The notes beneath the pieces are model-generated. The model worked only from the letters and a program-made list of their open reading frames with translations, was not told the origin of the DNA and made no database searches. The position numbers were made by a program, and so were the translations under genes. Positions 12,917 to 44,662 of a stretch of 64,000 nucleotides of DNA are shown piece after piece. Each line of letters opens with the position of its first letter. Position 1 is the stretch's first letter. This DNA comes from Obrimoposthia wandeli (lineage: Eukaryota), in the NCBI GenBank assembly GCA_977020255.1, contig CDROCS010000253.1, positions 1,612,001-1,676,000 on the forward strand, written 5' to 3'.

Positions 12917-13213
12917 CTAAACATAAGCTGACATTAAGTTTTGAGAAACTATGTTCATATTCAGGGTAAGTTTAACTAAGGCCGATACTGTAGGGTATTC
13001 GGCCTTGGCATCTTAATATGGATCGTTATACTAATAAACCAGCTAATTCTTAATCGACTTACTAATGGTAACAGTAGATAAAATATAAGGATATGCTAGA
13101 CTTGAAGCAACTACACTCGTCTAACATACGTCATAAGTTATTGATTTTAGATGACATTATTTATTGACTCGTGGGTTAGACTGTATAGCGTATGTTGAAC
13201 CTATAATGGGGAG

Positions 13214-13882
13214 TTGGTTATTGCCAACAAAGAGAAAGATAAACGTGCCGAGGAGTTAGTCATTGCCAATCAAGAGAAAGATAAACGTGCCGAGGAGTTA
13301 GTCATTGCCAATCAAGAGCTTGCTTTTCAAAACAAAGAGAAAGATAAACGTGCCGATGAATTAGTCATCGCCAACGAAGAGAAAGATAAACGTGCTGATG
13401 AATTAGTCATTGCCAATCAAGAGCTTGCTTTTCAAAACAAAGAGAAAGATAAACGTGCCGATGAATTAGTCATCGCCAACGAAGAGAAAGATAAACGTGC
13501 AGATGAGCTAGTTATTGCCAATCAAGAGAAAGATAAACGTGCCGATGAATTAGTCATCGCCAATCAAGAGCTTGCTTTTCAAAACAAAGAGAAAGATAAA
13601 CGTGCCGATGAATTAGTCATCGCCAACGAAGAGAAAGATAAACGTGCTGATGAATTAGTCATTGCCAATCAAGAGCTTGCTTTTCAAAACAAAGAGAAAG
13701 ATAAACGTGCCGATGAATTAGTCATCGCCAACGAAGAGAAAGATAAACGTGCAGATGAGCTAGTTATTGCCAATCAAGAGAAAGATAAACGTGCCGATGA
13801 GCTAGTTATTGCCAACGAAGAGAAAGATAAACGTGCTGATGAATTAGTTATTGCCAATCAAGAGCTTGCTTTTCAAAACAAA
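13214..13882 (+). repeat. In-frame tandem repeat: 13 x 42 bp (EKDKRA[D/E]ELVIAN[Q/E]) with 5 interspersed 21-bp units (ELAFQNK)
   Basis: Counted from the translation; ELAFQNK units begin at 13316, 13421, 13568, 13673, 13862, giving a 252-bp higher-order period. Confidence 0.97.
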
Positions 13883-15595
13883 GAGACAAAAAATCGAGTA
13901 AATAAATTAGCCCTTGCTGCTAGTGTATTCACCCATGCTCATGAATGCATCGCCATCACCGATGCTACAGGCACTATCATTGATGTAAATGAGACATTCA
14001 CGACTACAACTGGTTATAGCCGTGAAGAAATTACAGGACAAACCCCCCGTATTCTTCAATCTGGACGGCACCCTCCCGAGTTCTACGTTGATATGTGGCA
14101 AGCCCTATTAAAAGAAGGCCATTGGTCTGGTGAGCTTTGGAACAGACGTAAAAATGGTGAGATTTATGCTGAAATGAAAACTATCAGTGCGGTATGTGAT
14201 AAACACGGTATCACTACCCATTATGTTGCATTAGGAAGCGACATCACCTCGATGAAATCGCATCAAGATCAACTAGAGCGCATAGCCCATTACGATGTAC
14301 TTACCAATTTACCCAATCGTGTATTACTTGCTGACCGTTTATCTCAAGCCATGATTCGGTGCCACCGTCACGAACAGTCACTCGCTGTCGTATTTATAGA
14401 TTTAGATCATTTTAAACACGTTAATGATACACATGGTCATGATGTAGGAGATGAATTGTTGATTGCACTCTCACTCCGCATGAAATTAACGTTACGTGAA
14501 GGTGACACTCTAGCCCGTATTGGTGGTGATGAGTTTGTTGCAGTATTAGCTGATTTAGTTAACGTTGAAGATTGCGATCCAGTATTAGAGCGGTTACTAC
14601 TGGCAGCGTCTGAGCCTATCACTATTGGTGGCATAGTATTGAATGTATCAGCCAGTATTGGCGTTACTCTCCACCCACAAGATAATGTGGATGCCGACCA
14701 TCTCATGCGTCATGCTGATCAAGCCATGTATGTGGCTAAAGAGTTGGGTAAAAACCGTTATCATTTATTTGATACGGTTCAAGATGACGCGGTTAAAGTG
14801 CAGCGGGAAAGTCTAGAGGCTATTCGCTGCGCATTAGATAATCAGGAATTTGTACTTCATTATCAGCCTAAGGTAAATATGAAAATAGGTACAGTGGTGG
14901 GTGTTGAGGCACTAATCCGTTGGCAACATCCAGAGCAAGGTTTATTAAATCCCATCGAGTTCTTACCTGTCATTGAAAACCACACCATGATGATTGAAAT
15001 AGGTGAATGGGTTATTGATACTGTATTGACACAAATCAGTCAATGGCAAGCAATGGGGCTTAATAGCCCTGTAAGTATTAGCGTAAATATTGCCGCTGTA
15101 CAATTACAACAATCTGACTTTACACAACGGCTAACAAGGCAACTAGCCGCCCATCCCGATGTTGATCCACGCTATTTAGAGTTAGAGGTACTGGAAACAA
15201 GTGCCTTAGATGATGTTCAACATGTGTCAACCATCATGACTGACTGTATGGCGCTGGGTGTAAGTTTTGCTCTAGATGATTTTGGTACAGGTTATTCGTC
15301 TCTGACTTACCTTAGGCGTTTACCTGCAAGCTTAATTAAAATAGATCAGAGTTTTGTGCGTGACATGTTGAGTGATGCTGATGATTTGGCTATTGTTGAA
15401 AGCGTGATAGCCTTAGCTAAGACATTCAAACGTGGCGTGATTGCTGAAGGTGTTGAAACGATTGAACACGGCAAGGCACTATTGCAACTGGGTTGTGAAT
15501 TGGCACAAGGTTATGGTATTGCCAGACCTATGCCTGCCTGTGATATTCCTGCGTGGATTGATGGGTGGGAGTCTGATGTTAATTGGAAAATCTGA
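13214..15595 (+). CDS. Coiled-coil repeat-PAS-GGDEF-EAL diguanylate cyclase/phosphodiesterase; start uncertain
   Basis: PAS (IIDVNETF...GYSREE...PRILQSG), GGDEF with REGD I-site, EAL (VEALIRW, DDFGTGYSSL) all intact. Confidence 0.92.
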   Translation: MVIANKEKDKRAEELVIANQEKDKRAEELVIANQELAFQNKEKDKRADELVIANEEKDKRADELVIANQELAFQNKEKDKRADELVIANEEKDKRADELVIANQEKDKRADELVIANQELAFQNKEKDKRADELVIANEEKDKRADELVIANQELAFQNKEKDKRADELVIANEEKDKRADELVIANQEKDKRADELVIANEEKDKRADELVIANQELAFQNKETKNRVNKLALAASVFTHAHECIAITDATGTIIDVNETFTTTTGYSREEITGQTPRILQSGRHPPEFYVDMWQALLKEGHWSGELWNRRKNGEIYAEMKTISAVCDKHGITTHYVALGSDITSMKSHQDQLERIAHYDVLTNLPNRVLLADRLSQAMIRCHRHEQSLAVVFIDLDHFKHVNDTHGHDVGDELLIALSLRMKLTLREGDTLARIGGDEFVAVLADLVNVEDCDPVLERLLLAASEPITIGGIVLNVSASIGVTLHPQDNVDADHLMRHADQAMYVAKELGKNRYHLFDTVQDDAVKVQRESLEAIRCALDNQEFVLHYQPKVNMKIGTVVGVEALIRWQHPEQGLLNPIEFLPVIENHTMMIEIGEWVIDTVLTQISQWQAMGLNSPVSISVNIAAVQLQQSDFTQRLTRQLAAHPDVDPRYLELEVLETSALDDVQHVSTIMTDCMALGVSFALDDFGTGYSSLTYLRRLPASLIKIDQSFVRDMLSDADDLAIVESVIALAKTFKRGVIAEGVETIEHGKALLQLGCELAQGYGIARPMPACDIPAWIDGWESDVNWKI

Positions 15596-42045: not shown

Positions 42046-42294
42046 GACTTTTCCTTTTACAATTTTATAAGGTATTTAATTAGAATATATAGCAATCTGT
42101 TTGCTATAACTTGCTAAAATAAGTAAAAAATAGCACTCTTGTCTATTCAATTGATATCGCTAAGGGCTATAATTATAGTCGCACTCATCAATAGTAGTTA
42201 GTCACTGACTATATAGTTTACTTATGAAAACGACAAGTTTACTCAATATTTGCCATTATGTCAGAAAAAAACTAAGTTTTTACGGGATCTTTTT

Positions 42295-43461
42295 GTGATC
42301 ATTTTTCGTTATTTATTAAAAGAAGTCGCTAAAACACAATTAGCAGTATTTTTTGTGTTAATGACTATTTTTATCAGTCAAAAATTTGTCCGTGTGCTAG
42401 GTGATGCTTCAGAAGGAAGCATACCAGGGCAATTAGTGATGACTTTTATCGCCTTAAAAATACCAGACCTTGCCGGGTTTATTCTACCGCTTAGCTTATT
42501 TTTAGGTGTTTTGCTTGCCTATGGCCGTATATATGCGGACAGTGAAATGACCGTGCTACACGCCTGTGGTGTTAGTGAGTGGTACGTTGTGCGAGTCACC
42601 TTAGTACTGGCGGTTATTACAGCAATATTTACCGGTATTTTCACTTTATACCTAGCGCCGTTAGCCTCAGAATATCAATATAAGGTTAAAGAAGAGCTTG
42701 CGGCCGATTCTGGCCTAAGCGCTTTAGTTTCTGGACGCTTCCAGCAAACGGGAAATCAAGACGCGGTGGTTTTTATTCATGATAAAGACCGAAAAACCAA
42801 TAGTTTTAATAAGGTATTTGTTGCCCAGTTACCTAAAGGTGACAATGTTGATGCCAGTATTATTAATTCAAGTTTAGTCTACGCAAAAACAGGTAAGGTT
42901 TTTGAAGATGAATCGGGCTCTCAGCAGTTAGTGCTTGGCGATGGTATTCGTTACCACAGAGATATTGAGAGTAAAGAATTCCAATCGGTGGCATTCGACA
43001 AGTATTATATTCAAATTAAAGATCAAGAAGTTGAACATCAACACCGTAAGCTAAGCGCATTAACTACGTTAGAGTTGTATAACAATATGCCTCCAGAGTT
43101 GGAGTCAGCCTACCGTGCCACTATTCAATGGCGAATCGCTTTTCCTTTGATTTGTATTATTATCATTTTTATTGCCGTGCCGTTAAGTGTGGTTAACCCA
43201 AGGCAGGGTAAGTTTGGCAAATTGTTGCCAGCCTTGATGCTGTTTTTAGGGTATTTTTTATTATTAACATCTATGCGTTCTGCGATTGAAAAAAATGCTA
43301 TACCAAGTATTGTTGGATTGTGGCCCATACATATTAGTGCCTTATTTATCGGGGTAATGTTGTTAATGAAAGAACGTAGTAGCGGGCGAATGATTAAAGC
43401 AAAGTTACCAAAATTTAAACGTAAATCGATTAAAAAAACGAATGAAGGAAAAGAAAGTTAA
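42295..43461 (+). CDS. lptF: LPS export ABC permease LptF
   Basis: GTG start giving MIIFRYL; RIYADSEMTVLHACG; VNPRQGKFGKLLPA; divergent from pepA. Confidence 0.93.
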   Translation: MIIFRYLLKEVAKTQLAVFFVLMTIFISQKFVRVLGDASEGSIPGQLVMTFIALKIPDLAGFILPLSLFLGVLLAYGRIYADSEMTVLHACGVSEWYVVRVTLVLAVITAIFTGIFTLYLAPLASEYQYKVKEELAADSGLSALVSGRFQQTGNQDAVVFIHDKDRKTNSFNKVFVAQLPKGDNVDASIINSSLVYAKTGKVFEDESGSQQLVLGDGIRYHRDIESKEFQSVAFDKYYIQIKDQEVEHQHRKLSALTTLELYNNMPPELESAYRATIQWRIAFPLICIIIIFIAVPLSVVNPRQGKFGKLLPALMLFLGYFLLLTSMRSAIEKNAIPSIVGLWPIHISALFIGVMLLMKERSSGRMIKAKLPKFKRKSIKKTNEGKES

Positions 43462-43595
43462 TGCGCATTCTTGATTTGACTATTGGTCGATTTACTCATA
43501 ATAGCGCTTCGACTACCTTTGTGACGTTAGCTATTTTTGTTAGTGCCTGTTTGAGCGGTGTTATTAGATTTATTGAACAAGTTAGGGGCAATTAA
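43461..43595 (+). CDS. 44-aa mini-ORF, diverged copy of the LptG N-terminus/TM1 (could instead be a pseudogene fragment)
   Basis: MRILDLTIGRFTHNSASTTFVTLAIFVSACLSGVIRFIEQVRGN*; ATG overlaps the lptF stop and its TAA overlaps the lptG ATG; first 18 nt identical to lptG. Confidence 0.6.
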   Translation: MRILDLTIGRFTHNSASTTFVTLAIFVSACLSGVIRFIEQVRGN

Positions 43596-44662
43596 TGCGC
43601 ATTCTTGATTTGTATATTGGTCGCGTCATCGCATCGACTACCTTTGTTACTTTGGCTGTGTTTGTTAGTATCAGTGGCATTATTAAATTTGTTGAACAAA
43701 TGCGTGCTATAGGACGAGGCAACTATGATCTTGCCCATGCTGCATTATATGTACTTTACGCGGTGCCACGTGATGTAGAGGTTTTCTTTCCTATGTCTGC
43801 ACTGATTGGCGGTTTAATTGGTATCGGCATGTTAGCGAGTAATAGTGAACTCATTGTGATGCAAGCCGCAGGTTTATCGCGCTTAGATATTATTAAGTCG
43901 GTGATGAAAACGGCGGTTTTATTGATTATTGTCAGTATGGCGGTTGGTGAATGGTTGGCGCCTAGCGGCGAAGCGAAAGCGCGTGAAATTCGTGCGCAAG
44001 CGATTTCGGGCGGTAGTTTAATTTCATCTAAGAATGGTGTCTGGGCTAAAGATGGAGATTATTTTGTTAATATTGGTGAGGTGTTGGATAAAGGCCAGTT
44101 GAAGAAAATACAAATTTATGGCTTTAACGACCAGTTGAAAATAGATAGTTGGCTTTCTGCAAAAAGTGCAATTTATCAAGACAAAAGTTGGTTACTCACC
44201 GATGTTGAGGAGTTTTTATTAACTGATGACGAAATAATCACTAAAAATCATGAGAATAAAGTTTGGAGTTCATCACTAACACCGAAAAAACTTGGCGTAG
44301 TAACCGTTACTCCCGAGTCACTTTCTCTGCGTGGATTGATTGATTACTTAGATTATTTAGAAGCCAATGAACAAGACCCTAGTCGTTATGAATTAGCTTT
44401 TTGGCGAAAAATCATGCAACCATTAACAGTGGCTGTGATGCTATTAGTTGCCTTATCGTTTATTTTTGGCCCCTTACGTTCAGTTTCTATGGGGGCTCGT
44501 ATTATGATGGGAGTATTTACAGGGATTTTATTTTTCATCTCCAACGAAGTGTTGGGCTCATTAAGCCTGGTTTATCAGCTACCTCCGGTACTCGGCGCAA
44601 TGATGCCAAGTCTGGTTTTTGTAAGTGTCGCTTGGTACATCATTGGCAAGAAAGGTGCGTAG
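43595..44662 (+). CDS. lptG: LPS export ABC permease LptG
   Basis: MRILDLYIGR, LASNSELIVMQAAG, FIFGPLRSVSMGAR. Confidence 0.95.
   Translation: MRILDLYIGRVIASTTFVTLAVFVSISGIIKFVEQMRAIGRGNYDLAHAALYVLYAVPRDVEVFFPMSALIGGLIGIGMLASNSELIVMQAAGLSRLDIIKSVMKTAVLLIIVSMAVGEWLAPSGEAKAREIRAQAISGGSLISSKNGVWAKDGDYFVNIGEVLDKGQLKKIQIYGFNDQLKIDSWLSAKSAIYQDKSWLLTDVEEFLLTDDEIITKNHENKVWSSSLTPKKLGVVTVTPESLSLRGLIDYLDYLEANEQDPSRYELAFWRKIMQPLTVAVMLLVALSFIFGPLRSVSMGARIMMGVFTGILFFISNEVLGSLSLVYQLPPVLGAMMPSLVFVSVAWYIIGKKGA

Follow-up and report, generated by a model that had tools for sequence, protein, structure and literature searches.

Introduction

LptB2FG is essential and is a target for antibiotics. Several small inner-membrane proteins are known to bind larger complexes, among them AcrZ (which binds AcrB), KdpF, CydX and MgtS; these are encoded in single copy and are not recent fragments of their partners. 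Pieces of LptG itself can be harmful to the cell: synthetic 14-residue fragments of LptG TM1 inhibit the growth of E. coli, with a peak at residue 21 (Savinov et al. 2022, PMC9245647). The inhibition by these 14-mers implies that a TM1 fragment can act on the LPS-export machine. By alignment, residue 21 of E. coli LptG corresponds to residue 18 of the Colwellia protein.

Here we describe a natural locus in which a diverged copy of the LptG head lies between lptF and lptG. Its closest described relative is the N-terminus of LptG with TM1 (PF03739 and TIGR04408; 6mhu, 6mi7 and 6mjp), of which the mini-ORF is a paralogous copy, covering LptG residues 1-35. Unlike LptG, it is 44 aa long, carries two in-frame insertions within TM1, ends in a foreign tail and matches no family model. 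A search of the full-text literature for repeated heads of a downstream gene in a coupled junction, or for a natural small ORF derived from LptG, found neither. To our knowledge, no such repeated heads have been described, and we know of no natural small-protein partner derived from LptG.

Results

An extra LptG head between lptF and lptG

The whole stretch of DNA that was analysed (64,000 nt; hereafter the window) contains lptF, a mini-ORF and lptG in close succession (Table 1). Both flanking genes were assigned at the level of equivalogs: LptF by TIGR04407 (377.6 bits, with PF03739 also matched) and LptG by TIGR04408 (457 bits), with the solved chains 6mjp_G and 6mhu_G as further matches. 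The longest lptF reading frame reaches a TTG at 42250, but the LptF models and the gene calls in relatives, which are 388 aa long, favour the GTG at 42295 (V-I-I-F-R-Y-L-L). A sigma-70-like site lies upstream of lptF at 42151-42179.

Table 1. Features of the lptF-lptG junction in the window
Feature	Position	Strand	Basis or remark
lptF (LPS export ABC permease LptF), 388 aa	42295..43461	+	GTG start by homology; stop TAA 43459-43461
TAATG stop/start overlap, lptF/mini-ORF	43459..43463	+	sequence
134-nt tandem repeat unit (duplicated lptF/lptG junction)	43458..43591	+	direct repeats, alignment
mini-ORF, 44 aa: copy of LptG N-terminus and TM1 (codons 1-40) with short tail (codons 41-44)	43461..43595	+	intact; ATG 43461, TAA 43593-43595
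mini-ORF codons 11-15 (F-T-H-N-S), with mini-specific 9-nt in-frame insertion relative to lptG (V-I)	43491..43505	+	
mini-ORF codons 29-30 (A-C), 6-nt in-frame insertion within the TM1 copy	43545..43550	+	
most hydrophobic 19-residue stretch of the mini peptide (residues 20-38), predicted single membrane helix	43518..43574	+	
AGGGG, SD-like, in mini-ORF codons 42-43, 6 nt 5' of the lptG ATG	43584..43588	+	sequence; putative function
TAATG stop/start overlap, mini-ORF/lptG	43593..43597	+	sequence
lptG (LPS export ABC permease LptG), 355 aa, parent of the duplicated head	43595..44662	+	

A repeat scan of the window detected the direct repeats at spacings of 134 and 125, with the next, parental unit beginning at 43592, and found no further gene-head duplication of this kind elsewhere in the window. 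Tandem Repeats Finder did not report the array, because the copies are too diverged. The window also contains a large in-frame tandem repeat at 13106-14008, with a spacing of 42/63 nt and 13 overlapping copies of 252 nt. Inside the unit, no sigma-70-like promoter or intrinsic terminator was found on the plus strand, and the predicted folding of RNA from 43440-43650 was no better than that of shuffled sequences (z = -1.37), giving no sign of a structured leader or of a hairpin sequestering the ribosome binding site.

The first-pass annotation, made from the sequence of the window, had described the mini-ORF as a diverged copy of the start of LptG, tied to both neighbors by TAATG overlaps. Both overlaps are present, and the homology is clear: the mini peptide is identical to LptG residues 1-38 at 28 of 43 positions (65%; BLASTP, E = 3e-14), and both proteins start with MRILDLYIGR. 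At the DNA level the two align with 79% column identity and, as had been claimed, are separated by one 9-nt and one 6-nt insertion that keep the frame. The number of codons that differ only synonymously had been put at eight or more; we count 7 or 8, which is close to the claim. The retained hydrophobic helix was also confirmed, since the mini peptide has one hydrophobic helix of membrane-spanning length, with a mean Kyte-Doolittle value of 2.16 for its best 19-mer, against 2.04 for LptG TM1. Finally, the AGGGG that had been proposed as the Shine-Dalgarno sequence of lptG does lie in the last codons of the mini-ORF, where it may serve this function.

The mini peptide has no match in Pfam (E up to 1) or NCBIfam, and its hits among PDB sequences are weak matches to LptG TM1 only (residues 3-38, E = 0.4). 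A full-length LptF/LptG permease has six helices, a periplasmic beta-jellyroll and a score above the family cut-off; at 44 aa the mini-ORF is not one. No identical protein was found in a database of 5.8 billion proteins, implying that the mini-ORF was not called as a gene in the record of the source genome.

Origin of the repeat unit

To judge from the direct repeats and their alignment, the unit is a duplicated lptF/lptG junction. It probably comprises the last ~14 nt of lptF, including the SD-like motif and TAATG, followed by lptG codons 1-35, and the last five codons of the mini-ORF (Q-V-R-G-N) probably come from the 3' tail of lptF instead of from the G-R-G-N of LptG. The unit tail matches the lptF tail CAAGGTAAGGGTAATTA at 17/17 nt in L013 and 16/17 in L015, and at 12-13/17 nt in L008 and L016. 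In L007, which has no array, lptF ends in Q-G-K-G-N and so resembles the unit tails, which read Q-(G/V)-(K/R)-G-N. The origin of the tail is clear in the deep-trench clade only: averaged over loci, tail identity is 10.0/17 to the lptF tail and 9.0/17 to the LptG G-R-G-N, and in the window itself, where the two candidate sources score 9/17 and 10/17, they are indistinguishable. A CAA at both inferred breakpoints, read from the L013 sequence, is a possible microhomology.

In our proposal, two processes change the array: unequal crossing-over, and gene conversion involving lptG. Conversion in the opposite sense, with the units serving as a silent cassette that diversifies LptG TM1, was considered and rejected: LptG residues 1-35 are almost invariant across the species compared.

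A family of arrays in Colwellia

LptG relatives were scanned in one genome per species, which gave 80 Colwelliaceae loci, or 81 with the window. Extra LptG-head units lie between lptF and lptG in 10 of these 81 loci; C. demingiae, C. marinimaniae and Colwellia sp. TT2012 have two units each, and several MAGs have one to three. Protein word searches among short proteins added about 45 clusters of 40-45-aa relatives, some of which carry the NCBI label 'hypothetical protein [Colwellia]', and a DNA-pattern scan of metagenomes contributed five loci. The collected set comprises 56 copies (40 distinct DNA sequences) from 35 loci in Colwellia isolates, MAGs and metagenome contigs. Confinement to this strain, and frameshifts or stops in relatives, had been named in the first-pass annotation as results that would speak against its proposal. 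Instead, the mini-ORF occurs in many Colwellia, and 55 of the 56 copies are open.

The arrays hold one to three units of 134, 128 or 125 nt, lengths that are always 3n+2, so that every unit ends on TAATG. A 134-nt unit encodes 44 aa and has both insertions; a 128-nt unit encodes 42 aa and has the 9-nt insertion only; a 125-nt unit encodes 41 aa and has the 6-nt insertion only. No insertion-free unit was found among the 56 copies. TAATG is kept at every unit junction in all 35 loci, nearly all unit tails contain A(A/G)GGG, and the one-codon deletions of P0008 and P0037 preserve the frame. The sole interrupted unit is in a deep-trench MAG (L012:2501-2628), where one T has been lost from a run of T, changing CGTTTTACT to CGTTTACT; the shifted frame (-1 nt) terminates 10 nt past the lptG ATG. 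Either a genuine frameshift is tolerated here or the consensus is in error.

Among psychrophilic and piezophilic Colwellia the array has a patchy distribution. It is present in all five members of the deep-trench clade and absent from the closest relatives of the window (L002, L003 and L049), and most Colwellia, C. piezophila included, are without it. On an lptG tree made without the repeat region, this distribution needs at least 4-5 gains or losses. Copy number also varies between close relatives: in one set of closely related contigs (L081-L088) it takes the values 1, 2 and 3. The units of these contigs are ~93% identical to the window unit, yet the lptF tails differ (QVEER vs EGKES).

Two further cases lie beside the main family. 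At L022:1005-1380 there are three 125-nt units that end in a differing tail (…NKLRHN*) and, compared with the main family, are locally shifted in frame (-1/+1), and P0035 is a 40-aa metagenome protein that resembles an LptG head free of insertions, again with a tail of its own (…QLMVRH). Both may represent independent junction duplications in other Colwellia lineages.

Open reading frames and proposed translational coupling

The units have been kept open to a degree that exceeds expectation. In the unbiased set found through lptG, no nonsense codon arose over 170 parsimony steps, where 3.9 would be expected (P = 0.02); the 40 distinct copies together, a set biased towards called genes, likewise showed none, where 7.8 would be expected (P = 0.0004). 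Indels are almost all multiples of three, also in segments that could not be converted without losing the insertions, and ATG, A(A/G)GGG and TAATG are conserved unit by unit. A decaying remnant would be expected to show frameshifts, stops and lost start signals, and the single interrupted copy is far from that picture. The mini-ORF has the stop/start overlap of coupled ORFs at both of its ends, and in the family at large the same TAATG overlap joins lptF and lptG, in 64 of 81 Colwelliaceae loci.

The reading that we prefer, and that we hold to be about evenly poised between right and wrong, is that a duplication array, acting as a relay into lptG, has been kept translatable. A junction duplication would have created an additional, start-competent LptG head, giving rise to what appears to be an old tandem array whose copy number ranges from 0 to 3. 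If lptG is translated by termination-reinitiation, through TAATG coupling to the ORF upstream, then units that are open and stop on the next ATG would preserve the supply of LptG, and interrupted ones would be selected against. Such coupling would lead selection to keep the frame, the absence of stops, the ATG and the A(A/G)GGG in each unit. The units would act as a translational relay from lptF into lptG, and the sequence of the peptide would be free to drift except where lptG overwrites it. The peptide, a short N-in membrane helix, would most likely be a tolerated by-product, and the in-frame insertions within TM1 of every surviving unit may make this fragment harmless, less recombinogenic or both. 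By analogy with E. coli, the activity of TM1 fragments could explain why every surviving unit has an insertion at this place.

A relay setting LptF:LptG stoichiometry had been offered in the first-pass annotation as an alternative to a functional peptide; the open frames and the 3n+2 period fit such a relay, which would depend on the putative coupling. Several points weigh against a relay. The SD-like motif at each junction might allow de novo initiation, which could make a relay unnecessary; the lack of nonsense codons reaches no more than P = 0.02 in the unbiased set; gene conversion by lptG could by itself repair frames and stops in the core; and at least one assembly, L012, tolerates a frameshift. 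Moreover, weak selection on a generic membrane peptide would predict the same pattern of retained helices and of omega below 1 everywhere except in the tail.

Evolution of the peptide sequence

If the peptide itself were the object of selection, its amino-acid sequence should be constrained. Pairwise omega (Nei-Gojobori) was 0.13-0.6 for the mini-ORF, against 0.035-0.05 for lptG in the same genome pairs, and the non-synonymous divergence of the mini-ORF was several-fold above that of lptG, at about ten times the rate. By maximum likelihood, omega over all codons of the mini-ORF was 0.275, significantly below 1. Per-region values were obtained in separate codon-model runs on a fixed tree with scaled branch lengths. 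Omega was 0.126 in the core homologous to LptG (codons 2-10 and 16-28; 2dlnL 130 against omega = 1) and 0.59 in the mini-specific codons (11-15 and 29-38; 2dlnL 5.3); it was 0.53 in codons 11-15, the segment of the 9-nt insertion, and 0.89 in tail codons 39-44, neither of these last two being significantly below 1. In 15 independent close pairs, pN/pS was 0.39 for the core, 0.87 for the mini-specific codons and 2.1 for the tail.

The low omega of the core stems at least partly from concerted evolution with lptG. In about half of the genomes, codons 16-28 match the lptG of their own genome far better than the lptG of other genomes (for example, 1-2 mismatches to their own against a median of 5-9 to others), and the first 30 nt of units are homogenised within arrays. 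Among the core differences that do not follow the lptG of the same genome, 59 are synonymous and 79 non-synonymous; this corresponds to an omega of ~0.5 and implies that the amino-acid sequence of the mini-ORF is at most weakly constrained. The helix shows similar latitude. Among the 40 distinct copies, the Kyte-Doolittle value is at least 1.9 in 30 and at most 1.6 in 7, so that the hydrophobic helix is weakened in about a quarter of them, and charged or helix-breaking substitutions occur within it (R27 and E34 in L016_m1, Q23 and G24 in L008_m1, and P in several copies).

These data bear on the proposal of a functional small membrane protein. In this view each unit specifies a diverged decoy of LptG TM1 that would bind LptB2FG in the inner membrane, for instance on the LptF TM5/LptC side of the lateral gate, and so tune or buffer LPS export, with copy number as dosage. 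We consider this unlikely, although there are points in its favour: the ORF is open in nearly all copies in many species, every copy brings its own start codon and SD-like motif, most retain the hydrophobic helix, omega over the whole ORF is significantly below 1, NCBI lists several units as hypothetical proteins of Colwellia genomes, and TM1 fragments of LptG inhibit growth in E. coli (PMC9245647). Against it, omega is low chiefly where conversion by lptG is visible and is 0.6-0.9 in the mini-specific segments; residues vary widely, including the charged and helix-breaking changes just described; and copy number ranges from 0 to 3 in close relatives, most Colwellia having no array. Both translation of the units and binding of their product are putative. 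Protein-level selection had been read from the pattern of divergence in the first-pass annotation, and dN/dS had been proposed there as a check. The overall value (0.27) does lie below 1, as that reading predicted. The reading itself finds little support, since the low values are confined to segments visibly converted with the genome's own lptG, and the mini-specific values, the variable copy number and the weakened helices speak against it. A stronger form of the decoy proposal, in which natural TM1-decoy microproteins dock at the lateral gate of LptB2FG and their 0-3 copies allow Colwellia of cold and high-pressure habitats to adjust the dosage rapidly, seems to us improbable.

It is also rather unlikely, in our judgement, that the array is a neutral relic of tandem duplication, renewed by unequal crossing-over and by conversion with the lptG head, with both the peptide and any relay being irrelevant. 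Several observations would suit such a relic: concerted evolution is directly visible, copy number is unstable, the patchy distribution entails repeated gains or losses, the mini-specific segments evolve in a near-neutral manner and one copy (L012) is frameshifted. What it does not predict is the state of the reading frames, namely the lack of nonsense codons where 3.9-7.8 were expected, the predominance of indels in multiples of three even in segments where conversion would remove the insertions, and the conserved ATG, A(A/G)GGG and TAATG in every unit. Time has not been too short for decay either, since dS between the 134-nt units of different species reaches ~0.7, making them old enough to have decayed.

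Independent assemblies

We give next to no credence to the idea that the mini-ORF arose as an artefact of assembly or collapse in the genome of the window. We found no direct support for it, though an N gap within the L102 array shows that such repeats break some assemblies. Independent assemblies refute it: the same arrangement is present at 35 or more loci from independent isolates, MAGs and metagenomes, and a 748-nt contig of a public run matches the window over 43167-43914 without a single difference. The mini-ORF and the lptG head differ at ~20% of positions plus two indels, a divergence that had already been taken in the first-pass annotation to argue against an assembly duplication, as is now borne out.

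The gap in L102, a metagenome scaffold, is a run of N at 1063-1160, inside the array after the third unit, and is unfilled. Public runs gave further contigs from this region. An 873-nt contig from run X2, another sample (record 11; window 42980-43852), covers the 3' end of lptF and the mini-ORF with 39 differences; all of the 23 of these 39 that are shown start at 43589 and run on through the lptG head, mostly at third codon positions, a pattern that looks like a recombination breakpoint at the mini-ORF/lptG junction. Run X1 (record 7; window 43547-43620), which contains the exact window sequence, has a second short contig. The part of this contig that does not fit the window resembles the first unit of C. 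demingiae (L005), implying that the sample has either a second Colwellia or a second variant of the array.

Discussion

On a conservative reading, this locus would be a natural example of a tolerated junction duplication in an essential, translationally coupled operon, in which the extra units stay open and in register and so may hand ribosomes on to the essential downstream gene. Closely related strains with 0, 1, 2 and 3 units form a natural series in which the number of coupling steps can be set against subunit stoichiometry, and the same series bears on whether the in-frame insertions neutralise TM1 fragments. If, on the other hand, the units did prove to be TM1 decoys, they would parallel in nature the synthetic LptG TM1 fragments reported as dominant-negative in E. 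coli. The architecture and its conservation are unusual, but the case for a functional peptide is a weak one.

How, then, do the arrays compare with systems that are already described? Like the synthetic LptG fragments (PMC9245647), the units would yield short peptides that cover LptG TM1. The synthetic fragments, however, are engineered, exact in sequence and expressed from plasmids, whereas the natural units are diverged, carry an insertion in TM1 and have no known activity.

With AcrZ, KdpF, CydX and MgtS the mini-ORF shares a length of 40-45 aa, a single predicted helix and a position in or near the operon of its putative partner. It differs from them in that its copy number varies, its sequence is weakly constrained and binding is putative. 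The likeness to remnants of tandem duplication is of another kind, and consists in a partial gene head beside its parent, an unstable copy number and a possible CAA microhomology. Unlike pseudogene remnants, the units of different species have stayed open, retain a competent start and lie in register with the start that follows.

A further parallel is with translationally coupled gene pairs, joined by overlaps such as TAATG or ATGA. Each unit likewise has a terminal TAATG, and 6-7 nt upstream the preceding ORF contains an SD-like motif. Unlike ordinary coupled pairs, in which the two partners adjoin, the Colwellia arrays place one to three repeated fragments of the downstream gene itself between them, and the coupling is here a prediction from sequence. 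Overall, the array may work like a chain of translationally coupled ORFs that was built by gene-fragment duplication.
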